Positions 1,882 to 59,395 of a stretch of DNA of 64,000 bases are shown here, piece by piece. Position numbers and translations under genes: made by a program. Below the pieces are notes generated by a model, which saw only the letters and a list, made by a program, of their open reading frames with translations, did no database searches and was not told the DNA's origin. Positions within the stretch are counted from its first letter, which is position 1. Each line of letters begins with the position of its first letter. This DNA comes from Haliotis rufescens (taxonomy: Eukaryota): the NCBI RefSeq assembly GCF_023055435.1, contig NW_025964001.1:1674001-1738000 (forward strand), given 5' to 3'.

Positions 1882-4800
1882 GTGAGAGGGGTGGGTGTGA
1901 GTGTGTGGATTGGGAGTTTGAATACGTGTGTTCGAGAGAAAGAAAAGACTTGTGAATGGTTTCTTCGGTCGTAGTAATATGGAATGCATGCTTTCATGAT
2001 CTAATTGCAGCAAACTGTCAAGCATTAGGAGCCAAGGGTGTATCTCTCACTTGAAGAGAAACAAAACAAAACTTATGGGGCAAATACATAGGAACCGACA
2101 CTCATGAATAATTGTAAAGTGACAACGAGATTTGAACACAAATTGAGTTACCCGAGTGTGTATTGCTTGAAGATAGCTAACGTCCTTCTTGCAGAATATG
2201 TCCAGCGACGATTTTTGCTCTTTCACTGATCTGTATTCGGTGATTGGAACAAACGACAAAAGGACGCTACGTGCTCTAGGCTCCTTAAGAAGCATGGAAT
2301 GGTCGACGATTAAAGAAACTATTTTCCCAAAAGAGAAATATGGATTGCATAACAAGTCGCTAACTGTTGCTGTGTTGGAGGTAATGGGAACTCAATGTAA
2401 TTAATGTCAGTTATTGATAAGAATTGACGTATGATTTACCATGTCTCAGATATAAACTCAATAATAGGTAACTCAGGGCATTTGTGTCATTTCTCCCAGG
2501 TGCCTTGAACTGAATATAGCCGTAATGTTAGTGTGCTACGAAGGGATGTTCAAGGGGTGTTTAAATGAGACTTCCGTTTGCATTTCCACGATATCTATCA
2601 AAGTTATTCTAAACAGACAGCCTGAATCAACACCTGAATTTGGTTATGGACAGACGTAGATTGCCCGGAACGTGTGGTCCGAACTACTGAGACGATACCT
2701 TTTCTGTGTGGAGATATGACAACCCCTTCGAATCGTTATAACGATATGACATCAAACTGGCTCAAGAACCCGCACATGCTTGTTGTAACGGGGTCGGATG
2801 GCCAGGCTTGCTGACATGGTTGATGCATGTCATCGTATCCCAATTGCTTAGATCGATGCCCCTGATGTCAGTCACCGCCGATATATAGCTGGAATATTGC
2901 TGCAAGCGACGTTATACAACAAACAAGAACCCATACATCAATAGTTTTGAGGTGCGCTCAGGGTTAGCGCAGAGAGGTGTCGTAATAGAGTAACATATTT
3001 GATTTTAATGAGATTATTGTTTTATGTTGCTCATTATTTTACCAATGTTTTAAGAGTCCGCCGTTTGTGTTTCGAAGAGAGATGAATGATTCTGTCATCT
3101 TCAGCGGAGTTTCTATAGATCTACTAAATGAACTCTCACGGAGGCTCAATTTCAGGTATAAGTGATCTTGTATATGGTTGACCTACATATGTAACATAGA
3201 TTTGGGTATTACAATTGGCGTAACATTTGTACTTTTGTTTTGATGTAATTCCTTGCATTGGTTAGCAGTATCACATTTTTGTTTCTGTTCTTGAAAATAA
3301 GAAACATTACCTCTAAGTGTGAAGAATCACTTGAGGAAATTCCACACAGTCACAAAATGTTAGCATTCAGGATATTGTCACAAACAGTTACACCATTGTG
3401 GAGCCAGAAGATGGTGAATGGGGGATTCTGGTCGACGGCAAATGGACGGGTCTGATTGGACAGCTTGTTGAAAAGGTAGGAAATAAAAGATAAAAACGTT
3501 ATATATTTCAAAGAAAGTTTGTATACATTGTAGAAGCTTACCTGTGGTATCACTATAATCATGCATCAAATGACGTAAAATCCCAAACAATGATAAAAAC
3601 ACCTACACACAAGCAAGACCCTATGAAAGGAGCAAGGAACGTATAATGATTTTGAGGTACTTAAAATAATATTTTGGTCTCAGATTTTTCACACTCAAAA
3701 ATGTGTAAAAATAGAATGAAATTATTCCCTAAAGCAGTGACCATGAAAACTATCCTGTCTTTAACAACTGTCCAGGTGAAATTGTAGTTCTGTATTTTAA
3801 AGTCTCTTGACATGGTATGTCATATACTTCCCATGTACATTTGTCAGTTTACTCTTGTTGGTGCATTACGCTATCATGTATTCAACAAAACAAATAAGGT
3901 GCCGCTGGTATTTTCCTGAATGGCCAATACCCATTCTCAGTATGTTACGTTAAAGTTGAAAAAAACTTTTGGCATCGGTAAGACCTTTGTGACAATAACC
4001 AAACTACTAACCCTTCACAAAACAATGACAACTCAATATCAGCTGTTACATACATGGGCTGGAATCACACTTTGCCACTGCCTGGATTAATCGAATCTAT
4101 CAAAACCCGTGAAGATCCGGGGTAGAATAGGTCTTCAGAAACCAATGCTTGCCGTAGAAGGCGACTATGTTTGTCGTAAGAGGCGTGGAACGATGCTTAT
4201 GATATAAATCACTGGATTGTCTGGTCCAGACTCGATTATTTACAGACCGACGTCATACAGCTGGAATATTGCTGAGTGCGGCGTAAAACAACAAATCAAC
4301 CAACCAAATCTATCAATTTGCAACTGTCGTCTTTGACATGTGCCAGATCCTGACCAATTTGTCGGCCTTTGACACATGCGTAACATCTAGAAAACGGAGG
4401 TCGGATCTCATTACGATATCATGATATTTAGCACCACTCAATGTTCCACTTTCTTTTTTGCAGAAAGCAGACTTGGTTGTTGCGCCCATTACAGTCAGTA
4501 GATCCCGAAAGGAAGTTGTAGATTTCACTGTACCCTACTTGTACGTCGACTCGGGAATCATCATACGGATGCCATCAGCGGCAACATTTTTTACGCTTAT
4601 CTCCCCTTTCCGGTACCACGTCTTCATGTGTTTAGGTATAGCACTCGTCCTGACAACAACTTTCCTGCTCCTCTTGGAAGTGGCGACTCCACAATGCCCC
4701 CTAAACAGACCAGTTGACAAATTGAGGCGTTATGGAGATACAGCCTTCCAAATCTTTGGCTCCCTCATGTATAAAGGTTTGTATTGTGTAGAATATCTCA

Positions 4801-7800: not shown

Positions 7801-10800
7801 CAAATATTTCGTGGTTGCATGATTAGAAAACACGTTCCGACTGTCACTTTCATGATCTGGTAAGCGACGCTCTGATTGGTCGAATGAAAGGTCGTTCTGA
7901 CGTGGCCACTAATGGGATGTCCTCAGATCTTTGTTTGGCGGTAGCGAGTACAAAGATTTGATTTTAATGAGATTGCCAAGATACACAAGATATGGGCTTC
8001 ACGCATTGCACCCATATGGGGAATCGAACCCGGGCCTTCGGCGAATAAACACACAAGTGCCTCGCTGTATTCCAAACAATCTATGGGGACAGAATTTGGT
8101 CTACTCCTGCTACAAATTTAGTTTCAAGTCAAGAAACGGAGACAGAATCCACTGGCGCTGTTGTCTGAGATGATGCCGTTCCAGAATGGTAGCCGTAATT
8201 CTGAAAGAAGAAAAATGTTTTACAGCATCGTGCCAAAAGAGAGTAAAGTTGTTTAAATTCCTATATATTTCAAGTAATAACATCTGCATATGCTGAAATT
8301 ACCTGGTTCCGTTTTTCACCAATTTACAAGACGAAACAAAAGTTACAAGCCGGTTAAAAGAGTTAATTTTGTGACTTTAAACAGTAAAACAAATGCACTC
8401 AAGACGAGAATTGTCAATATCGGGTGTTTTAGAAATAGGAAACTTGTTCCGATGTCAATGTTGGTTGTAAAACGTAATGGATTTAATGAATTGCAAATTA
8501 CGTACGCATTACGCAAATGATTATACATCATGTCACAGATGGGCTTCCGTAGATTTTTTATTTATCAAGAAGGGTCCACTTTTCGAAATAAATTTTCACA
8601 TAATTATGTTTCTAATAATTGTAACAATGTTGGATGAATTTATAAAAGACAGGAATATGGTTATCGGTCGTTTTTAACACGCATTGGAAGCATTGGAAGC
8701 CAACTGCTATTATTTTCATCATTATTAGTTACATTTTTAAATAAATGTGTATTTGTCAACTTACCATAAAATAATACGGCTCCGTTATCGTTGTTTTTTT
8801 CTGAATATTTTCCAAGGCACTAGCAGGATCACTACGAATTATCTCCCTTTGCGAGCTCTTCTTGATGTACGGCGGCCCGTAGATGCCATATTCTCCTCGT
8901 TGGTTTTTATCTTTTTTGATGCGGGAATTAACCATTTTCCCAAAGGTTGATTTTGGTAGACTTTTTAATACAAACTCAAATGCATTCAATTAAAAGGAAA
9001 CAGTCGTAAAATATTCTGTTGCAATTTTCTTGAGGTTAAATTACAGAATGACCAGACTAATTGAACGATCGTCAGCATGTGTTTAAGAATAACAATCAAA
9101 TAGTGATTATACCAGCTGGGGCGAGCGTATCCAGCACCACCAGAGGCACCCATCACAAACACATGAACAGGCAAGTCAAGTGTACACCTGAACAAACACA
9201 GCAAAGTGTGGGACAAGTCAAAATATGAAATTGCGTCGGACATTATTTTGGTCACTGATGCATCAAATTTGGAAATGTCCTCCACAAAAGCCAAAACTCC
9301 TGAAAGGTATACAGCGAACAAACTTTTTAGCAATAGTCGTATGACTCTCTTTGAAATCTTGGTAGAACCAGCATGACTTAGTCTATTGGTTATTCATCTT
9401 TCTTGTCATATAATCTTGTGAAACGTAATTGAGCAGGCGTCTCGATGGCAGCACAATTGGTACCCACGGGTGCCGACTTAATTTTAGATGAAATACAAAA
9501 TCCCCAACTTGAACACTGATGTCTTTGCAGATGCCTGACATTTGACATACTGTTTTCTCAGTAAACTTCAGCGGACATTTTCTGTCATTTTTGACAAATT
9601 GTTCTGAAGCTTTGAAGTTAGCGATGTACTATATCTATGATCATCACGTCTTATGACAAGTGTGGCATGGATCACGGAAACTTTGTCATGTTGGTTGGTT
9701 GGATCGTTTGTTGTTTAACGCCGCACTCTGTCAAGTCTGTCAATAATCGAGTCTGGACCAGACAATCCAGTGATTGATATCATGAGCATCGATCCACGCA
9801 ATTGGGTTGGTTGGTTTGTTGTTTTACGCCGCACTCAGCAATATTCCAGCTATATGACGGCGATCTGTAAATAAACGAGTCTGGACCAGACGCTCCAGTG
9901 ATTGATATCATGAGCATCGATCCACGCAATTGGGATCGATGACATGCATCAACCATGTGACCACCCAATCCCGTTAGTCGCCTTTTACGACAAGCATTGG
10001 TTGCTGAAGACCTATTCTACCCCGAATCTTCACGGGTCCCAAGCAATTGGGATACGATGACATTTATCAAACCAAGTCAGCGAGCTTGACCACGCGATCC
10101 CGTTCGTCGCCTCTTGCGATAACTTTGTCTTGTGGGATAGTGGTTTAAAGCATGGAAAAAGCAAAGGTTTTTAGAAACCTTGTGGTATTAATTCCACTTG
10201 CCTCGAATACTTTCTGTGAATATAAAGAAACTATTGAGTATTATAAAAAATATTCTTTTGTGTTTGCCCGCCTCAGTGGATAGAGAGTCTGTCCGGAGAG
10301 CGGAAGGTTGGGGTTTCGATCCCCGGCCGCGTCATTCCAAAAGACGTCAAAAGATACTGGTTGTTACCCTGCCTGACGCAAGGCATTAGGGAATAAAACA
10401 GAAACTGGTCAGCTCGGAGTTAAAACTGCGGCTTGTTGTGTCACTGTCACTATAACCTGGGCCTTAGTCCGTACTACAACAAGCAACCACAAACGTATCG
10501 ACTATACAAGAAACAGGATAGAACGAGTCGAGACATAACACATAACACTTCTGAACAGGAAGACACCCCTTCCCTCAGCATGTGAAAACTGGTGTTTGCG
10601 TAGAGACAAGGTGTGCGTTGCAAAGCGTCAATCGCTAGCAAGCGATGTACAGCGATTCGCCTTACAACAGTGCGCAACTTCCAGCCGCTTGCAAGCGAAA
10701 CAATCGCTGGCTGAGGTCGCTTCTTTCCTAAAACCAATATGGCGGCTGACTTTGATCGAGGAACAAGAAATTCTTGACTGGATCAACGAGGAAATGAGCA

Positions 10801-20959: not shown

Positions 20960-23616
20960 GGGCGAAGGCCTCCCGGCGAAAACTGGTTTTGAATGATTTT
21001 AAGACCATTTTAATGGCCTTAGAGAGCATGTATTCTGAAAAATATATTTTTCAAAAATTAAAAGAAAAGATGAAACACATACCTTGAGAAACTGTATTCA
21101 ATTCAAAGTAATCCATGTCCATCATATATAACAAATCATTGAACAAGATTTGTTGCCAAATAGTCACTTCCAAAGAGACTCTAACAATAAATGATTCACA
21201 GTTTTGATTCACATAACCATGATAACTCTTTCAATCTATTTAAAGCACATTATCAAGACATTTTCAAAATCAAAGAAAAGCAATTTCTGTCATGACACTT
21301 CATTATTTGCACAAATTTTACCAAACAACATTTTCATGAAAGAAACCATCTCATCATACAGAAGGTAGATGAGGGGTTCTTCTCTCTGGAGCAGTACATT
21401 GAGTCGAGTGAAAAGAGGCAATATTGAACTTAAAGGACAAGTACACCTTTGTCATTGGATTATTGAAGTAGCAGACCAGCCTCTTGAATCTTGCATTGCT
21501 TTCTTTACTTGACAAGAAACAGCTGCGGCTAGCTTCAAACAGATGAAGGTTTCTTTCCACTGCTGACTGCAAAGTAAGCCATCTTGTGAACACATGCTTA
21601 ACAACACACTTGTACCCCTGATCACAAAAGCGACATAATTCTGCTAAGGATGATTTTCTTTTGGTGGATTTATCAAACCAATAAAATATGTCAACAACAA
21701 GATCTCTCGTTCAAATGCCTCAGAGGCTTTGGATGCCATGTTATGTAGTAAATGACAACGGCAACCCACAAAATAACACTCATCATTTTTCTTCAAAACT
21801 CTTCATTTTATAGAGTCTCTTTTTCCCATGTTGACACTGGCATTGTCAACCCCAACAGCTACACAGTTAGTCCATGGAATGTCAAATCCTTCTAATGTTT
21901 CATTCATTTTGTTGAAGTTTGCTTCAGCTGTAGCAATTTCTACTCCTTGTGTGCAGCACATGTCCAAGAAATGAAATTCCACACTTGCTGCATTAATGTC
22001 AAAAAATCTTACTGTGAGAGGATTCATCTTTTCTATGCCTGTATCATTAGACCCATCTATGGCAAGGGAGTTGGGTGGTTGATTTGTTGTTTTACGCCGC
22101 ACTCAGCAATATTCCAGCTTTATGACGGCGGTCTACACAATAATCGAGTCTGGACCAGACAATCCAGTGATTGATATCATGAGCATCGATCCACGCAATT
22201 GGGATCGATGACATGCATCAGCCAAGTCAGCGAGCCTGAACACCCGATCCCGTTAGTCGCCTTTCACGACAAGCATAGTCGCCTTTTACGGCAAGCACGG
22301 GTTGCTGAAGACCTATTCTACCCCGGATCTTCACAGGTAAGGGAGAATGTCTGGATCTTCATCTTTTCCACAAGCTGAGCTAAAAAACAAACATAAAATA
22401 CAACACTCCTGGTAAAATATCCATTTCTGTTCAAAGTAAATTCTTACGATCATGGAAATGTTTTTATAGAATTATCTCGGTAAATAAAATCCAGTATTTT
22501 CAATAAAATAATAATAAATAACTTCATTGCTTATAAAATAATCTACTTATACTGCGAAAAGAAGGTGCAATGGCTCCATTCAACATGCATGTTGTCTTGG
22601 TCTTGGCAGATGAATAGTTCTTGGCAATCTTAGAAAAGTGAGAAACAGCATAAATAAAGGAGTACTGTTTAAGTGTATCACATTTGGATATGGAAAATGC
22701 ATTAAACTAAATATCAAATAAAACTTGTGAACATGGAGAGCACTCAAGGAAATTAATACACATGTCCTAATGTACTACACTTAATTACATGGCAAGAAAA
22801 ATGTCCCATCACCAAAAAAAGAAAAACAGAGAAAGAATATGTTGTTATATTTGTACATTATCAGATAATTACAATGCATAGCTGTTTTCATTCAATAACA
22901 TACCATGCAGATCATGCAACGGTTCTGTAAAAAAACCAATACATATAAACAAAAATTAACAGAAAATTAATTTGGCATGAATAGAAAGTAAAATTTTTTT
23001 TTGTAATTTTAGGCTTAAAACTTTCAATCATGTTGATAGATTCCAGTTTTATAAATTCAGAATGAAATTTTACAATAATCAAAATTACATGTTCACATTG
23101 TGTATTCTTGAGAAAAAATGAAGTGATGGACGTTGATGACGATCGTTGTTTGGCTAAATTCGAGTGAAGATCACTTTCAATGTGTCGTTGTACGTCTCGC
23201 AGTCCCATGTGTTTGCAACTCAATGTCCGACTGCATGTAGTGCAGCGAAAATTTATCTTGCTTGAAGAATCAGATACAATACATGGAAACATCTTTGTCC
23301 AGTTGGAATTGAATCTTGTATCGAACTTTGCAGACCCTCGATATTCGTCGTCGCTCATGTTGTATCTCGTGTCAATATGATCAAACATGGCGCGCGCTGA
23401 TTCTGGACTGGTTAATTAGTGTGGCTACAACAAGTAATTGCGCGAAAGGGGCAAGAATGAATCCAGCCTCGCCGTGTTGGTTGCAATCGCGATAAATCGA
23501 AAGAGAAGAGCGTTTCAAAATATTTTTATCTACATTTTATATGAATGCGTGAGAATTTCCCAACCTTGCGTGTGAGCGTGACATAGGTGATAAATGCGTG
23601 AGAGTTGACAGGTATG
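20960..23616 (-). mobile_element. hAT-superfamily DNA transposon remnant, apparently with an intron-split transposase
   Basis: BED-like FRCTTC...HMGLRDVQRHIESDLH; IAKNYSSAKTKTT; SLAIDGSND, GVDNASVN, GCRCHLLH, KHVFTRWLTL; terminus CATACCTGTCAACTCTCACGC at 23616; left end not identified. Confidence 0.8.
22071..22338 (-). mobile_element. Family A retroposon inserted in the hAT transposase
   Basis: Full copy; TSD AAGGGAG at 22064-22070 and 22339-22345. Confidence 0.88.
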
Positions 23617-36356: not shown

Positions 36357-37037
36357 GGCGTCTGCGGTAGGAACGACCGCACTCTGAGTGGGCGGATCTT
36401 ACAGAGTGATCGGACAAATCACTATATGACGTCATGATAACAGACATTTCATTGGTTAATGCGTACACGGATGACGTCATGTAAGTGAGTGAGTGAGTGA
36501 GTTAATTTTAAGTCACATCGGCAATATTTCAGCCATATCGTGACTATCAATAGTTAAATAGAATACATATACTGAAACGATTGTAAAAACCTGCCAACGA
36601 GGGACAGTAAAACAACTAGACTTATCACAGCAATAAATTTAAAACTAGTATGTAATAATAAAATCAATAGCGCTATACATAACAATACATTATAAAAACG
36701 GGCTATAGATCGCCAACAACTGAAGGTAGATCACCATGCTAGGGTCCATGGGGACTTACAGTACTTTTGCTACCTGCATGGACCCCAGCCGGATTTACAT
36801 CATCCCTTCAGGTGTTGGCAATTATTGACAAATGTAGCCAAATTAAAAGAACACATATTCTACGATTAAAACTGTAGTTGGAAAAACATACTTTGAATGA
36901 TATGGACTTACGATACCCTCTCAGGGGGACAATAATTTTATACTACTTTAACCCCCTTTGAGGATACAGCCACGATCAATCACAGAGATTTATTTATTCC
37001 ACTAATGCTAAAATTCATTTATTATATACAAAGCTAA

Positions 37038-40000
37038 TTAACAAAATTTACTGAACAACTCTATTTCTTTTAAAAAGCCAATAATTAAATGAGAACTAAT
37101 AGTGTTAAAAAGATCCTTCATAGAATTAACCTTGAAATAGTTATCCCTTGTGATGGAAAAATCAACACAGTCAAGCAGGACATGCTTGACCGTGATTCTT
37201 TCATCACAAGGGATGCAAAACGGAGGATCCTCACCTTTCAATAGATATTCATTGGTGTAACGCGAATGGCCAATACGACATCGTCGTAAAATGACCTCTT
37301 CAAATCTGGACTGACAACCCAAGTAGGTGTAACCGATATTTGGTTTAATGTCATGTAATTTATTGATACCTACTTGGGTGTCCCACTTCTGTTGCATCAG
37401 ATCTCGTATATATGATCCAATCACAGGCCTGTAATCAGTGTATGGAACAAGAAGTGGTGTCACAGATTTGTTGAGTGCAGCTTTAGCAGCAGCATCGGCC
37501 ACTGTGTTACCTTTGATTCCAACATGGCTTGGTAACCAGGAAAAAACGATGTCGCATTGGCCAGTGGCAAGTTCATTATATAATTCAAGTATTTCGATTA
37601 AAAGTGGATGTTTTGTAGATTGATTTGTAATTGCCTGAAGACAGGAAAGAGAGTCGGAAAATATAATAAATTGTTTATGCTTCGATTGTTTACGAATGTA
37701 TTTTAGTGCTGTTAATATGGCGTTTGACTCGGCTGTAAAAATAGAACAGTTATCCGGTATTCTAGATGATATTGTCCTGGATCCGATGATGGTGGCGCTT
37801 GCAACTGCGTCACCATCCTTTGATCCGTCGGTAAATATAGATTGATAAGTATTATATTTGTTTCGTAACTGATTATACTCTTGTTGAAAAATTAGTTGAT
37901 TGGTTTCAGATTTTTTAAATTTAGTTAAGGTTAGATCCACCTCTGGTTTCACTAACTGCCATGGAGGGGAAGTCAAAAGTTGGGTGGGGGCTATATTTTC
38001 GAGAATTATTTGAGCAGCCAAAATGGACGATTGTATTCTTAGTCCAAGGGGTGGAGTGAGTGATGATTTTTTATTATATAGGTCTTCATAAAGAGGGTTA
38101 AAAACACAGTCATAGGCTGGATTGGAATTCAAAGAACGTAATTTAGAAACGTATTGTAAAGATAACTTAATGCGACGTTGTTTAAGTGAAGGCTCATCAG
38201 CCTCCACATACAAACTATGAATTGGAGAAGTTCGAAAGGCTCCAAGGCAAAGCCTCAGGCCCTGATGATGAACAGAATCCAGTTTTTTCAAATTGCTTTT
38301 ACATGCTCCACCATAGACGATGGAGCCGTAATCAAGTTTAGAGCGGATGAGGGCTCTGTACAATTGGAGGAGGGTTTTCTGATCCCCTCCCCATTTTGCG
38401 TTTGAAATTACTTTTATGATATCAAGAGCCTTCAGGCATTTAGTTTTTAAATAATTTATATGTGGCAGAAACGTCAAGTGATGGTCAAAAATAAGACCAA
38501 GAAACTTGGCCTCTTTGACAACTTTGATAGGAGCACCATCCAAAACTAAATCAGGGTCCTTATGTTGCTTATACTTTCTGCAAAAATGAATGCAGTTGGT
38601 CTTGGCTTTTGAAAATTTAAAGCCATTTTCCAGACACCATTTATTGATTTTGTTTAAACACAATTGTAGTTGTCTTTCAATGGTATGCATGTTTTTACCA
38701 CGACAAGAAACATTAAAATCATCCACAAATAATGATCCATCAAGTGAATCGTTTAAAACCTTCGACAAACTGTTTATCTTTATGCTGAACAATGTTACAG
38801 ACAAGATACTGCCTTGTGGGACACCCTGATCCTGATTGTAATGGTCAGACAGGGTTGAACCCACACGAACTTGAAATTGTCTATTTTTTAAAAACTGAGA
38901 TATAAATAGAGGCAAACGGCCCCTTAAACCAAAATCATGTAGATCTTTTAAAATACCATACTTCCATGTAGTATCATACGCTTTTTCGAGATCGAAAAAT
39001 ATTGATACAGCATGTTGTTTATTTATTATGGAATTTTTAATAAAAGATTCTAAACGGACTAAGTGATCGACAGTACTACGATTTTTGCGGAAACCACATT
39101 GAATGTTAGTAATGAGATTGTTGGTTTCCAAGTACCAAACTAAACGATTATTTATCATACGTTCCATAGTCTTACAAACACAGCTAGTGAGGGATATTGG
39201 TCTATAATTCGAGGGATCAGTATGATCACGACCAGGCTTAGGTATAGGAATGACAGTAGCATGTCGCCAAGATGATGGAAAATTTCCAGAAGTCCAAATA
39301 TTGTCAAAGATATTTAGCATAGTTTCTAAACACGATTCAGGTAAATGTTTAAGGAGCTGATAATGAATATTATCAGGCCCCGAAGCAGTATCGTGAGCTT
39401 GCCCAAGGGCAGTATGGAGCTCATGAATGGAAAATACTTCATTATAATCCTCACCGTTATCTGAGTGAAAATTAAGCTTCTTTTTTTCTTGTTGTTCCTT
39501 ATATTTCTGAAAGTTAGGCACATAATTAGATGATGAGGAATGTTGAGCTAATGTTGCACCTAATTTATTAGCAATATTAGATTTATCGGTTAGTAGAGTG
39601 TCACCCTCCTTGAGATGGTGAACACTGGATGTGGATCCTTTTCCTTTAATTTTCTGAACCATATTCCAAACCTTTGAAATAGGCGTTCGGGAATTAATTT
39701 TAGAAACATATGTTTGCCATGACTGTCGTTTATATTGCTTAAAGGTGCGACGAGCCTTGGCATTTGAAATTTTAAATTGATTCAAGTTATGGACTGTTGG
39801 ATGGCGACGAAAATATTTTTCAGCCTTTTTTCTAGCCTTTCTAGCTTGTTTGCAGTCCATGGTAAACCATGGTTTACGGATATGTGGAACCGTAGAGGAC
39901 TTTGGGATACATTCATCAGCTACTATATTCAATTCATCAGCAAAAACCTGAATAGGGTCATTATCATTTAGAAATAATTCGGGTTTTAGTCTTTCAGCGC

Positions 40001-40727
40001 ATAATGTTTGAAATAAAGACCAATTGGCCTTTGTAAAATTCCATCTTGTAGAAGGTGGAACATCAGTTGGATTAACAGTTGATAGTATAGTTTGGAAATG
40101 GTCACTTCCACATAGATCATTGTGAACTGACCATTCAAAATCGTTCAGTAAAGTAGAATCAGTGAGAGACACATCCAAAGATGAGTAAGTGCCAGTTGCA
40201 GGATGCAGATACGTATGGGAGTCATCATTGAAGATACACAGATCATAATTAGATATAAAATCTTCAAGTATTTTACCTTTAGCATTTGTGTTTGTACCAC
40301 CCCAGAGTGGATTGTGGCCGTTCAAATCACCCATGATAACACAGGGCTTAGGGAGCTGATCGTAGAGATTTTGAAGATCAGACTGCTGGAGAGCTGATGA
40401 CGGCGGAATATACAGAGAACACAATGTAAATGCAACGTGCAAAGTAAGTCTCACTGCAACAGCTTGCAGATTAGTATTGAGAACAACAGGACTGTGTATA
40501 ACGTTCTGTCGCACAATAATTGAAGATCCTCCTGTGGCCTTATCCCCTGGAGGAGAAAACGAATGATACGCACTGAACTGACGTAAATTAAAATTGTCTG
40601 TCTGCTTTAAATAGGTTTCTTGTAAGCAGAACGCTGATGGATTAAGATCCTGGACTAAGATATGTAATTCATTAAAATTAGTCTTTATCCCTCTACAATT
40701 CCACTGTACAATATTATTTGAAGACAT
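37038..40727 (-). CDS. LINE ORF2: APE endonuclease, reverse transcriptase, RNase H, C-terminal zinc motif (1229 aa)
   Basis: QWNCRG, LQET, GDLNGH, SDH (APE); YRPISL, QCGFR, FFDLEKAYD, GVPQGSILS, LFVDD (RT); IFTDGSK, AESNAI, FSDSLS, WLPSHVGIKGN (RNase H); CIPC..HVLLDC. Confidence 0.97.
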   Translation of the reverse strand: MSSNNIVQWNCRGIKTNFNELHILVQDLNPSAFCLQETYLKQTDNFNLRQFSAYHSFSPPGDKATGGSSIIVRQNVIHSPVVLNTNLQAVAVRLTLHVAFTLCSLYIPPSSALQQSDLQNLYDQLPKPCVIMGDLNGHNPLWGGTNTNAKGKILEDFISNYDLCIFNDDSHTYLHPATGTYSSLDVSLTDSTLLNDFEWSVHNDLCGSDHFQTILSTVNPTDVPPSTRWNFTKANWSLFQTLCAERLKPELFLNDNDPIQVFADELNIVADECIPKSSTVPHIRKPWFTMDCKQARKARKKAEKYFRRHPTVHNLNQFKISNAKARRTFKQYKRQSWQTYVSKINSRTPISKVWNMVQKIKGKGSTSSVHHLKEGDTLLTDKSNIANKLGATLAQHSSSSNYVPNFQKYKEQQEKKKLNFHSDNGEDYNEVFSIHELHTALGQAHDTASGPDNIHYQLLKHLPESCLETMLNIFDNIWTSGNFPSSWRHATVIPIPKPGRDHTDPSNYRPISLTSCVCKTMERMINNRLVWYLETNNLITNIQCGFRKNRSTVDHLVRLESFIKNSIINKQHAVSIFFDLEKAYDTTWKYGILKDLHDFGLRGRLPLFISQFLKNRQFQVRVGSTLSDHYNQDQGVPQGSILSVTLFSIKINSLSKVLNDSLDGSLFVDDFNVSCRGKNMHTIERQLQLCLNKINKWCLENGFKFSKAKTNCIHFCRKYKQHKDPDLVLDGAPIKVVKEAKFLGLIFDHHLTFLPHINYLKTKCLKALDIIKVISNAKWGGDQKTLLQLYRALIRSKLDYGSIVYGGACKSNLKKLDSVHHQGLRLCLGAFRTSPIHSLYVEADEPSLKQRRIKLSLQYVSKLRSLNSNPAYDCVFNPLYEDLYNKKSSLTPPLGLRIQSSILAAQIILENIAPTQLLTSPPWQLVKPEVDLTLTKFKKSETNQLIFQQEYNQLRNKYNTYQSIFTDGSKDGDAVASATIIGSRTISSRIPDNCSIFTAESNAILTALKYIRKQSKHKQFIIFSDSLSCLQAITNQSTKHPLLIEILELYNELATGQCDIVFSWLPSHVGIKGNTVADAAAKAALNKSVTPLLVPYTDYRPVIGSYIRDLMQQKWDTQVGINKLHDIKPNIGYTYLGCQSRFEEVILRRCRIGHSRYTNEYLLKGEDPPFCIPCDERITVKHVLLDCVDFSITRDNYFKVNSMKDLFNTISSHLIIGFLKEIELFSKFC

Positions 40728-42070
40728 TAACTTTTAGGGGGATTGACAGGAGATCTACCCCTCACCTTCCTTGAGGGTGACAAACTTTGTGCCCTTTGAT
40801 GGCTGATGTCGGACACATCCATGTCCTCAAGGGATCCATACTTATTAAAAAGTTGGATCATATTCTCTGCCCCTTTTGAGGCTCTACCACTCTGATACCT
40901 TTTGGAAGATTCTGATTTTGGTTTAGACTTGTTCTTAACAATTTGTTTGATATTTTTGTCTGAGTCAGATGGTTGAGCTGATAGAGTTGATGACTGTTCT
41001 CGAGTTATAGTTGAATCCTTACCACAAGAAGTCTTGGACTGAGTTATTTCTTGTGACGTGATGAGTGTTTGGGAACTAGAATTCTCATGTGAATGCCTCA
41101 CCTGGACAGCTGCAGACAATAATGTGGGACCAGATGTTTTAGTCCATGTGTAATCGGTCTGGCAACCGGTGGAGTGACATGTAACAGGTTTAGTCTTAGA
41201 AATCTGGAGTGAAGCTGAAAGAGCAGTAGAATAGGTTGGACCTGGATGTTCCTGATCAAGAACAATCTTTTTGGCATCGAAAAAAGAAATGTTGCGCTCG
41301 TGCTTGATTCGTGAAATTTTAGACTGGAGTTTCCATGTTGGACAATCTTTGGATGAAGAGGGGTGGTTGCCAGAGCAGTTGACACAGAGTGGAGGTTTGT
41401 CACAGATGGTATTGTTTTCACATGTGCCAGCACATCGATGACATGCAGCTGGAACATGGCATGACTTTGATCCATGGCCATACTTTTGGCAGGAGTAACA
41501 GCGCAAGGGATTTGGAATAAATGTATCTACCCTTAAATTACAGTAGCCAGCTTTGAGTGAGTCTGGACGCACTGGAAGACAGAATGTGAATAGATAAGTG
41601 TTGGTTTGGGTAATTTCATTATTTTTCTTTGCTGTGAAGCGTTTGACGGCAGTTACTCCTTGGGAAGTCAACTCTGTCACAATGTCATGTTCTGTCATGT
41701 CTGAAAGGCAACGTCCGATGTCACGTACGATGCCTTTACTGCTATTTAATGTTCTGTGAGGAGAAACCTGAACAGGAACATTAGCCAGTGATTTGGTTGA
41801 TAAGAGAATTTGAGATTGAGTGGGTGTTCTGCATTCAATTAGAAGAGAGCCAGATCGTAGTTTTTTCACTTCTTTCACATTGCCAGCCAAACCTTCTATG
41901 CCCTTTGCTATGGCAAACGGATTGAGTTTTAAAGGACTACCATCTGGAGCAGACATCACAAGAAATCGAGACCAATATTCAGGATTTGTGGGACGTTTAT
42001 GAGTATCATCATCCTCAGAAGAGAACGAATCATCAGATTCGTGAGAGCGTTTTTTGAGTGGGGGTGCCAT
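40727..42070 (-). CDS. LINE ORF1 gag-like nucleic-acid-binding protein (447 aa)
   Basis: VKKLRSGSLLIEC, PHRTLNSSKGIV, NPLRCYSCQKYGH; zinc knuckles CX2CX4HX4C and CVNCSGNHPSSSKDC. Confidence 0.93.
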   Translation of the reverse strand: MAPPLKKRSHESDDSFSSEDDDTHKRPTNPEYWSRFLVMSAPDGSPLKLNPFAIAKGIEGLAGNVKEVKKLRSGSLLIECRTPTQSQILLSTKSLANVPVQVSPHRTLNSSKGIVRDIGRCLSDMTEHDIVTELTSQGVTAVKRFTAKKNNEITQTNTYLFTFCLPVRPDSLKAGYCNLRVDTFIPNPLRCYSCQKYGHGSKSCHVPAACHRCAGTCENNTICDKPPLCVNCSGNHPSSSKDCPTWKLQSKISRIKHERNISFFDAKKIVLDQEHPGPTYSTALSASLQISKTKPVTCHSTGCQTDYTWTKTSGPTLLSAAVQVRHSHENSSSQTLITSQEITQSKTSCGKDSTITREQSSTLSAQPSDSDKNIKQIVKNKSKPKSESSKRYQSGRASKGAENMIQLFNKYGSLEDMDVSDISHQRAQSLSPSRKVRGRSPVNPPKS

Positions 42071-42597
42071 GGTAGTTTTAAATGTGGTTCACCCTCCTAG
42101 CTCCCCACCCACCATGGAGTGTCAACGTGGACGATGCCACACGTTTGTGGATCTCCAACAGACGGCACCAAGGATACCAGGAGGGTATACTCAAGCAGAA
42201 GTATTAATCGAAGATCAATATATCCACCGGATTGGCCCATGAGCCACCGCCTTCTGGCACTGGCATCTAGGCAAATTTTGAATTTATCAAGAACAAAATC
42301 AATAGTCATGTATATTCAAACATATGTCATAAATTCAAAAAATTCAAACAGTAAATCAAATACAGTTATACATTTCCAAGCCGAATATTTCGAAAATTGA
42401 GCAAAAAGGTAAGGTGCTCAGGGCTTGGCATGACCAGCCGATTGATAAGACCGGGCCCATCTTACCACCCGTCTAGGCGAAGTAAGGGTCGAAGTAGTGT
42501 GTTGGGCAAAGGAACACAGTTCCAGGAACCAGTGCCCTCAACTACCAGACTCCCGTCCTCCGCCGACACAGGGACGCAACCCACGGCAAACGGGCTG

Positions 42598-42668
42598 CCC
42601 ACTTTGGTCGCCTCTTACGACCAGCAATGGGGTGCTGTGGAAATATTCTACCCCGGTTCCACACGGGG
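42598..42668 (-). ncRNA. Conserved pseudoknot + hairpin RNA motif in the LINE 5' UTR
   Basis: CCCCG/CGGGG stem; loop TGTGGAA pairs with TTCCACA; then CCCA/TGGG encloses TGGTCG-TAAGAGG-CGACCA. The same architecture with compensatory changes starts the family-A repeats. Confidence 0.65.
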
Positions 42669-42726
42669 GAAGAGCTATTAGCGCTACCCAGCACTCACCA
42701 CGAGGAGGTTGCTCTTCACGAGTGCC
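42669..42726 (-). ncRNA. Minimal HDV-like self-cleaving ribozyme at the LINE 5' end (predicted)
   Basis: GGCACTC(P1) GT GAAGAGC(P2) A ACC(P3) TCCTCGT(L3) GGT(P3') GAGTGCT(P1', G1-U wobble) GG(P1.1 with L3 CC) GTAGCG CTAA(catalytic C at 42681) TA GCTCTTC(P2'); G1 abuts the TSD. Confidence 0.85.
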
Positions 42727-44385
42727 TGACGTCATGTAAAAGCACACCCATGTTGGTGGTTTGACAACAAGGACGTAAGTTATAATGGTAATAAATATCC
42801 ATCAAACGATTCCAAGACTTTTCAACAAACACTTAGGTCTTGGGTTTCAAAACCTACCTGCCATACCGTCTTCACATCTTCATAAAATGATCCTGTGGAA
42901 TGTCCACGATTTATCCAACACAGTCCAACACACAAATTATATAGTTCTGCCCTATTCTCTAGGCGAGAACGAAATACGTTTGTCATAGGGAGTAGCGTGA
43001 TTGAACAAAAAAAACATAAAATGTATCACGGCACCAATCGTAATCATGTGGTGTACGGTATATCTGCAGTTTATGAATAGTATTTCTCACAATATATACG
43101 GCAATCGGTGATTTCAACCGTGTTTTTTTCGTTGAGTTCGTCTTGCCTTCATCTGAAATCTGGATGTCAACGATCGTGTAAAAAAACCTGGTAATGGTCC
43201 AAAATATTTTCAAGTGATGAAATTATTTTTTCTCGTTTCCGTCACATGTTTTCATTGCCCAATAGCAATGTGTTTTGGCAAAGTCACACTTGTCCGAAAG
43301 TTCCTCATGCCGAAGTTACCCGATCCGTTAAAATTGACGGGTCCCATGCAGTGACCAAGATTCCCTGTTGATTGTCATGCCAAGTGTCATTTGCATAAGG
43401 CCATCCATATTTTTTGTATGTGTTTCTCCCCTCAAGCCTCAACTAACAAGAGAGCGGGCGGACGTAATAAGATATATTACTTTTTTTTAAATGTCTTTCA
43501 ATAATTGTGTAAGTTATTCTATGCCATTTAAAAAAAGAGTTTAAACTCTTGGTACTAGAATCTAGACTATGAATTAATTTATGATGTAGATCTAGTCGCG
43601 TTGCTTCGAAAACGAATTTTTGATAAACAAGTGAAGAAAGATATAGTTGACCTGGTTCTTTTATGACGGTGCGATGGTAGATCTAGTAGTATTTCTTTTA
43701 TTAGATCGGTGCGCATTATTCCACAGCGGCAAGAACGATTGATACATGAAATGAAATTTTATATTGTTTCAGTCGAAATGGAGATAAAATACGGACAGCC
43801 TCACATACTTCTAAACGATGTTCAGATAAATATTTGTTCACATAAATTCTGTCATGTGCGTGACCACGGATTTCAAAATTATTTTCATCAAGCTTATTCG
43901 GGTGGCTGGCTACACCTATCATCCCTTCTTCGGCATGAACACATGATTGGTCTCGAAACTCAAAGCAACAATGTTGCTCTCTGTTATAATGTCAATGCCT
44001 CGACAATGTTCCTGGTCAGTTAATTTTAACAATGTAATACACAGAGCCTCATTCACGGCCTCATCACAAGATTCCTTCCAAATACCGACCCATTGATGAG
44101 GGTCACGACCTTGGGATGAATTACTAAATATTTTCTTGAATACTATTATTAAAAACATCCTGTACATGGTACTTTTGGATTGCACTGCTGATTTCTTTTA
44201 TGACTTTCTAAAACCTTTTGTTTCCCCCCTTTCTAACCATGCGATCTCCGAGCAGCCACGCCCCATGAACCCATTAGATTGCTGCTTACAACTGTCAAGA
44301 ACTTTGCAAATTCGTTTGCCTTTAATATGAGCAACAAAACATTTTAATGTGACGCTTAATTTGACGGAGAGTTGATCGAGAGCCT

Positions 44386-59153: not shown

Positions 59154-59395
59154 TTTGTTTGGTTGTATTAAACGCCGCATTCAGCAAGATTCAAGCTACA
59201 GGACGACGGTCTGTGAATAATCGATATCACGAGCACCGATCCACGCAATTCATCCTGGTATACGATGATATGCATGAATCACGTCAGCGAGGATGACCAT
59301 CCGGTCCCTTCAGTCGCCTCTAAAGACAAGCATAGTCGGCTTTTATGGCAAGCATGGGTTGCTGAAGACCTATTCTACCCCCGATCGTCACGGGT
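59154..59395 (-). mobile_element. Family A retroposon, diverged copy
   Basis: Tail to pseudoknot start; the corresponding remnant in the other duplicate is at 34150-34209. Confidence 0.75.

Follow-up and report, generated by a model that had tools for sequence, protein, structure and literature searches.

The first 58 nt of an intact LINE in this stretch of Haliotis rufescens DNA (the 64,000 nt analysed here, referred to as the window) very probably form a minimal, P4-less HDV-like ribozyme that is self-cleaving and processes the 5´ end of the element, a reading made from sequence comparisons. The LINE, of 6,242 bp, lies on the minus strand, with the ribozyme-like motif at element nt 1-58 (window 42726->42669), and its features are the following:

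42727-42739, minus strand: 5´ copy of the target-site duplication (TSD), TTACATGACGTCA, 13 bp, directly against G1
42669-42726, minus strand: minimal (P4-less) HDV-like ribozyme motif, 58 nt, with predicted cleavage 5´ of the G at 42726
42416-42668, minus strand: conserved second 5´ module, nt 59-311, with 93.6% identity against 70.9% for ORF1 in relatives
40727-42070, minus strand: ORF1, 447 aa, gag-like, with three CCHC knuckles
37038-40727, minus strand: ORF2, 1229 aa, with APE endonuclease, reverse transcriptase and RNase H (Exo_endo_phos, RVT_1, RNase_H)
36485-36500, minus strand: (TCAC)4 3´ tail of the LINE
36472-36484, minus strand: 3´ copy of the TSD, 13 bp, immediately after the (TCAC)4 tail

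The initial annotation had placed G1 beside a 13-bp TSD and had called the element intact, and both statements hold: TTACATGACGTCA lies directly against G1, and the two ORFs are uninterrupted and carry APE, RT and RNase H domains. Given the TSD against G1 and its second copy after the tail, the insertion is therefore 6,242 bp long with G1 as its first base. The ORF1 stop overlaps the ORF2 start in a TAATG at 40725-40729 (minus), which suggests coupling of the two ORFs by termination and reinitiation. ORF1 had no match in Pfam. The architecture (APE, RT, RNase H and a gag-like ORF1 with CCHC knuckles) is compatible with the I superfamily, and Matetovici 2016 (PMC4758252) makes the label "Nimb-like" indirectly plausible.

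On direct reading, the 58 nt contain P1, P1.1, P2 and P3 as a nested double pseudoknot in the canonical HDV order and spacing (A3 is the alignment with phage sequences described below):

42720-42726, minus strand: P1 5´ strand, nt 1-7, GGCACTC, pairing with 42690-42696; columns covary in A3
42711-42717, minus strand: P2 5´ strand, nt 10-16, GAAGAGC; all 7 P2 pairs covary in A3
42697-42709, minus strand: P3, ACC/GGT (nt 18-20 with 28-30), around L3, TCCTCGT
42704-42705 with 42688-42689, minus strand: P1.1, C22 and C23 with G38 and G39
42690-42696, minus strand: P1 3´ strand, nt 31-37, GAGTGCT, 7 bp with nt 1-7, including the G1-U37 wobble
42682-42687, minus strand: linker (L4) GTAGCG, 6 nt in place of P4; G43 is subfamily-specific, most relatives having A
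42678-42681, minus strand: J4/2, CTAA, with the putative catalytic C46 at 42681; invariant in all aligned class members
42669-42675, minus strand: P2 3´ strand, nt 52-58, GCTCTTC, 7 bp with nt 10-16

Every helix, loop and joint of the double pseudoknot proposed in the initial annotation could thus be located, as could the reduction of P4 to the 6 nt GTAGCG that makes the motif one of the minimal P4-less type. Also present are the HDV-type C46 in J4/2 (C-N-R-A) and the G1-U wobble closing P1. The numbering of P1, P3 and P1.1 is that of the genomic HDV ribozyme (P1 nt 1-7 with 31-37).

A comparison with the Rfam HDV models by Infernal, which had been proposed as a check, gave a divided answer. 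In a cmscan of 8 kb with 4,227 Rfam families, RF02682 (HDV-F-prausnitzii) aligned end to end at 42670-42726, with J4/2 of the window against GCUAA of the model, but the score of 27.5 bits (E 0.064) falls below the curated gathering cut-off of 44. No other HDV-type Rfam family was found in the 8 kb at E<=10. The Rfam models expect a P4 helix, absent here, and cannot score the pseudoknotted P2 and P1.1. A generic HDV descriptor (7-bp P1, 3-bp P3, L3 with CC, GG after P1, C-N-R-A and a P2 of at least 5 bp) was run over the window and 84 genomic loci (~360 kb, both strands) and matched this ribozyme family alone. A covariance model built from phage sequences alone (R2) had its sole significant match in the 64-kb window at 42669-42726, with 48.3 bits and an E-value of 1.4e-9; model R1 gave 67.1 bits at the same site. 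Judged by the RF02682 alignment, the descriptor and R2, the match of the window to the HDV fold is beyond chance. The z-scores from nested MFE folding were non-significant, as expected because the fold is a pseudoknot, and were counted neither for nor against it.

The same core occurs in phages. With the pattern ACCTCCNCGTGGT-N7-GGGTARYGCTAA, derived from the abalone motif and a metagenome LINE locus (L119, described below) with P1 and P2 left free, matches were found in 66 IMG/VR phage contigs and 10 bacterial MAG contigs. The 22-nt invariant core of the window is identical to that of these 76 phage and bacterial minimal HDV-like ribozymes, an identity that holds by construction since the set was retrieved with the abalone core; the independent evidence from this set is the P1/P2 covariation and the tRNA adjacency only. 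The P3/L3/P1.1 segment is invariant, L3 nt 24 excepted, in the abalone copies, L119 and the 76 phage and bacterial ribozymes. Parsing of the phage and MAG loci yielded 65 unique ribozymes, 52-60 nt long, in 58 of which P1 is a perfect 7-bp helix; the set contains 51 different P1 and 55 different P2 sequences. Alignment A3 combines the abalone sequence with 15 phage sequences of the same geometry in 58 ungapped columns. When it was scored with pseudoknot notation, 99.7% of cells were paired, compared with 34-52% in slid controls, and 13 of the 14 P1 and P2 pairs were changed on both sides. ARAGORN placed a tRNA 3´ end at the ribozyme G1 in 4 of 10 loci checked (L168, L195, L223 and L237), the defining context of theta ribozymes, which marks them as such. 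One of the four, L237, has two ribozyme copies within a dense tRNA array, each at a tRNA 3´ end. The ten MAG contigs with the minimal core (L231-L240), assigned to Bacilli, Erysipelotrichaceae, Saccharibacteria, Omnitrophota and others, are probably prophages or phage contigs binned into MAGs.

Related LINEs outside the genome carry similar structures. ORF1 has numerous homologues in other species of Haliotis and in assembled metagenomes, and a scan of JGI metagenome contigs with the ORF1 alignment A1 returned 80 loci. Several of these related LINEs (ORF1 32-43% identical) have HDV-like ribozymes on the ORF1 strand with differing P1 and P2 sequences, ~470-760 nt upstream of the ORF1 match in the four loci measured (L119, L142, L146 and L118). 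Ribozymes of this type thus recur at the 5´ ends of this LINE group. L119 (nt 26-81) has a 56-nt minimal form that scores 45.3 bits with R2 and whose core is that of the abalone motif; its helices are P1 GGGGGCC/GGTCCCT and P2 AGGGGAG/CTCCCCT, so that, relative to abalone, both helices are changed on both strands. As read from these alignments, P1 and P2 covary both across the phage class and across the related LINEs. P4-bearing forms were found in L146 (RF02682 42.6 bits, E 6e-5), in L148 and, with C-rich P1 helices, in L116, L118, L142, L145, L151, L158 and L161. The P4 hairpin of L148 rises between GTA and TAG, at the position of GTARYG in the minimal form, which resembles the longer form with P4 deleted. 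Besides its 8-bp P4, L148 (125-245) contains 36 extra nt, including a hairpin, inserted between L3 and the 3´ strand of P3, an expansion unusually placed for an HDV-like fold, and this ribozyme may be inactive. A further locus, L101, was not counted, its motif being degenerate (L3 without CC and no GG after P1´).

Within the abalone genome (1.33 Gb, 615 contigs), which two H. rufescens RefSeq ORF1 proteins match at 100% identity, a first look with the initial 300 nt of the element turned up 2,184 candidates, and the 40 scored were all 100% identical. Other full-length copies had been expected to share the 5´ end if it is set by cleavage, and their comparison gave a common start at GGCACTC after unrelated flanks, in 30 of 30 loci from the search with the element's 5´ end and in 30 of 30 found with RF02682. 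All of the ~80 genomic copies examined begin exactly at G1, and the predicted cleavage site therefore coincides with the first inserted base in every other copy examined as it does in the window. Three copies (L025, L040 and L055) have the (TCAC)n tail of another copy just ahead of them, 4-8 nt from G1, which suggests insertion beside or into existing tails of the same family. Two loci considered as members of a SINE family were rejected. One, L033 (G000:C602), in which the ribozyme and 12 nt are followed directly by the ORF1 end and the ORF2 start and C46 is replaced by G, resembles an internally deleted LINE copy; the other, L034, resembles a copy interrupted after ~94 nt.

Among 88 copies there are 25 distinct 60-mers. 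The window type (G43) accounts for 39 of the 88, many of them 100% identical over 300 nt, and is the youngest and most numerous subfamily sampled; 18 copies differ from it by A43 alone, and 6 have A43 and C51. The differences common to more than one of the 88 copies fall at three unpaired sites, L3 nt 24, nt 43 and nt 51, with the exception of a small older group with an uncompensated change at P2 nt 13; L3 nt 24 and nt 43 are variable in the phage set too. A few old copies have uncompensated P2 mismatches. Compensatory changes in P1 and P2 were sought among the Haliotis copies and none were found, both helices being essentially invariant, so that the copies provide conservation there without covariation within the family.

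This conservation extends beyond close copies. In relatives selected by ORF1 similarity, with the ribozyme not used in the selection, identity to the window element was 97.5% over nt 1-58, 93.6% over nt 59-311, 74.9% over nt 312-656 and 70.9% over ORF1. The ribozyme segment is better conserved than the coding sequence. The identity breaks sharply at element nt 311, and the second module (nt 59-311) may act as a promoter, as an IRES or in protein binding. The initial annotation took the element to need no promoter of its own, but by analogy with the promoter/ribozyme system of L1Tc Pr77 this module could be an internal one. We compared window 42416-42726 with two sets of loci (L001-L030 and L061-L084). 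The nt 1-311 module of the window copy (minus strand) is shared at 99.4% identity with another abundant LINE family, which is <70% identical to the window element beyond nt 311. Two sister copies from the family of the window element itself (L063 and L065), 99.5% identical over 3.5 kb, have a version of the module that is ~97% identical over nt 59-311. These identities suggest that nt 1-311 is an exchangeable 5´ module that may have moved recently between LINE lineages by recombination or template switching.

Parts of the module also occur apart from the LINE. Four SINE-like copies in the window, at 4106-4165 (+), 9974-10036 (-), 22278-22337 (-) and 59335-59394 (-), begin at the equivalent of LINE nt 60 after unrelated flanks; they keep nt 60-120 of the module and lack the 58-nt head. 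Their first hairpin is compensatorily changed (GTGTGGAA/TTCCACA vs GTGAAGA/TCTTCA). Because these copies start behind the ribozyme, the second module can head an element without it. The 5´ region of the LINE is thus modular, made up of the putative ribozyme, a second conserved module and a variable UTR, and it has apparently been swapped between LINE lineages and partly borrowed by SINE-like elements.

Every copy most likely shares its start base because a self-cutting ribozyme lies at the 5´ end. The steps can be drawn from the HDV-like ribozymes of R2, RTE and L1Tc (PMC3774820, PMC3185411, PMC4035085). Read-through transcripts, or transcripts starting upstream, would fold co-transcriptionally at the junction and be cleaved immediately 5´ of G1 by general acid-base catalysis, in which C46 (42681) and a divalent metal close to the G1-U37 wobble would take part. 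The resulting LINE RNA would carry a 5´-OH and end, on its 5´ side, in the compact double pseudoknot, and target-primed reverse transcription to the end of this processed RNA would give insertions that begin at G1. Translation of ORF1 from an uncapped 5´-OH RNA would presumably require internal initiation, and the conserved nt 59-311 are a candidate for internal initiation or for an internal promoter.

A transcription start fixed at G1 would likewise make the 5´ ends uniform, and the conserved head might then serve chiefly as an internal (LINE) promoter, or as a binding site for protein, that sets the start of RNA polymerase at G1, the ribozyme-like fold being incidental or vestigial. Conservation of the entire 311-nt module, beyond the ribozyme alone, would fit such a function, as would the promoter function that Matetovici 2016 proposed for the LP head (PMC4758252). 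We nevertheless regard this explanation as improbable. It does not account for invariant bases that coincide with the HDV catalytic core, nor for P1 and P2 pairing that is kept despite sequence change between abalone, L119 and phage; moreover, the SINE-like copies keep nt 60-120 without the 58-nt head, and the head is therefore dispensable for the function of the second module. The two roles are in any case compatible, since L1Tc Pr77 is both promoter and ribozyme (PMC3383444). Very unlikely, in our judgement, is that the motif is a relic of an ancestrally active ribozyme that misfolds and does not cleave in the G43 subfamily, the 5´ end being set otherwise: G43, where A43 is usual in the relatives and almost universal in the phage members, strengthens an alternative hairpin of nt 32-37 with nt 42-47, 6 bp long and preferred by nested MFE folding, that competes with P1 and sequesters C46, but no subfamily sampled is younger or larger than that with G43, one phage ribozyme (L169) likewise has G43, and P1 would form co-transcriptionally before the competing 3´ strand is made.

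We therefore return to a self-cleaving 5´ head as the preferred reading. If the RNA cleaves, the minimal P4-less HDV-like ribozyme extends beyond phages (~99% of reported examples are from Caudoviricetes), and a core of phage type heads an active, high-copy animal LINE with 2,184 first-look candidate 5´ ends. Cleavage would also supply a mechanistic reading for the cross-phylum 5´ head left as an untested "promoter" in 2016, and a compact natural 58-nt module that defines the 5´ end for retrotransposon-based insertion tools, in which the 5´ structure of the template matters (PMC11331408).

That cross-phylum head is among the closest known counterparts of the abalone motif. Matetovici 2016 describes a ~70-bp head common to SINEs of Haliotis, Littorina, oyster and scallop and present at the 5´ ends of Nimb-17_LMi, I-3_DR and RTE-9_CPB; it is named the LINE promoter (LP), with the L1Tc ribozyme cited as an analogy only (PMC4758252). 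Like the abalone motif, the LP head (~68-70 bp) stands at the extreme 5´ end, with homology that stops right after it, in Haliotis and in Nimb-clade LINEs; unlike it, it was read there as a promoter and not as a ribozyme. Compared by description, the abalone ribozyme is probably the LP head of 2016. In the literature searched, we found no later study that takes up the LP head of PMC4758252. A wider reading, which we put forward tentatively and rate at somewhat under an even chance, is that the phage-type minimal ribozyme is a widespread 5´ head of animal retrotransposons, the LP head included, whose 5´ ends would arise by self-cleavage of read-through transcripts. Its scope would take in locust and zebrafish Nimb LINEs, a turtle RTE and mollusc SINEs, across which the LP head is conserved (PMC4758252). 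Going further, phage tRNA processing and metazoan retrotransposition may share the RNA module through transfer or through two separate origins.

Among ribozymes, the nearest relatives are minimal forms of this kind, of which the drz-Mtgn ribozymes were reportedly described by Riccitelli in 2014. Minimal P4-less forms have been described from metagenomes and phages, and the theta ribozymes, minimal HDV-like ribozymes of Caudoviricetes, self-cleave in vitro and are inactivated by a C-to-U change (PMC10879173). Theta and drz-Mtgn ribozymes resemble the abalone motif in length (52-60 nt, 58 here), in the absence of P4, in a 7-bp P1 starting with G-U, in a P2 of 6-9 bp and in the core ACC-TCCNCGT-GGT followed by P1´ and then GG-GTARYG-CTAA. 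Theta ribozymes differ in that they lie at the 3´ ends of phage tRNAs, which they release, whereas the abalone motif forms the extreme 5´ end of a non-LTR retrotransposon in an animal. On the strict theta criterion (a tRNA 3´ end no more than a few nt from the cleavage site in a Caudoviricetes genome), the window motif falls outside the class: upstream of G1 come a TSD and host DNA that is unrelated from copy to copy. The shared core could reflect either common descent or convergence on a universal HDV core. The search of Kienbeck 2024 covered, among eukaryotes, human, mouse and "complete" genomes, mostly of protists, and ~99% of its hits were in phages (PMC10879173). The literature searched gave no account of a minimal HDV-like ribozyme from a mollusc or a Nimb-type LINE, and as part of an animal LINE the phage-type minimal form seems not to have been described. 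A small eukaryotic HDV-like ribozyme from sea urchin, drz-Spur-3, is similar in its L3 (TCCCCGT) and in the GG-TAATG start after P1, as taken from primer sequences (PMC5984629), but keeps a P4 hairpin, is ~69 nt long and differs in the sequences of P3 and J4/2.

HDV-like ribozymes at the 5´ ends of non-LTR retrotransposons (R2, RTE and the Baggins group) were reportedly described by Eickbush in 2010 and Ruminski in 2011. Such ribozymes process the 5´ ends of R2, RTE and L1Tc/ingi LINEs (PMC3774820, PMC3185411, PMC4035085); with ribozymes at LINE 5´ ends established, the principle seen here is not new. The ribozymes of R2, RTE, Baggins, L1Tc and ingi resemble the abalone motif in lying at element nt 1, with predicted release of the element RNA from co-transcripts, and in L1Tc/ingi the likeness extends to a head common to otherwise diverged elements, as in the Pr77 hallmark. 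The abalone element is set apart from R2, RTE and L1Tc by its combination of APE, RT, RNase H and a gag-like ORF1 and by its random genomic targets. Unlike the abalone motif, the ribozymes of R2, RTE, Baggins, L1Tc and ingi include a P4 helix and in many cases extensive peripheral domains; P4-bearing ribozymes are found in the related LINEs L146, L148 and L118.
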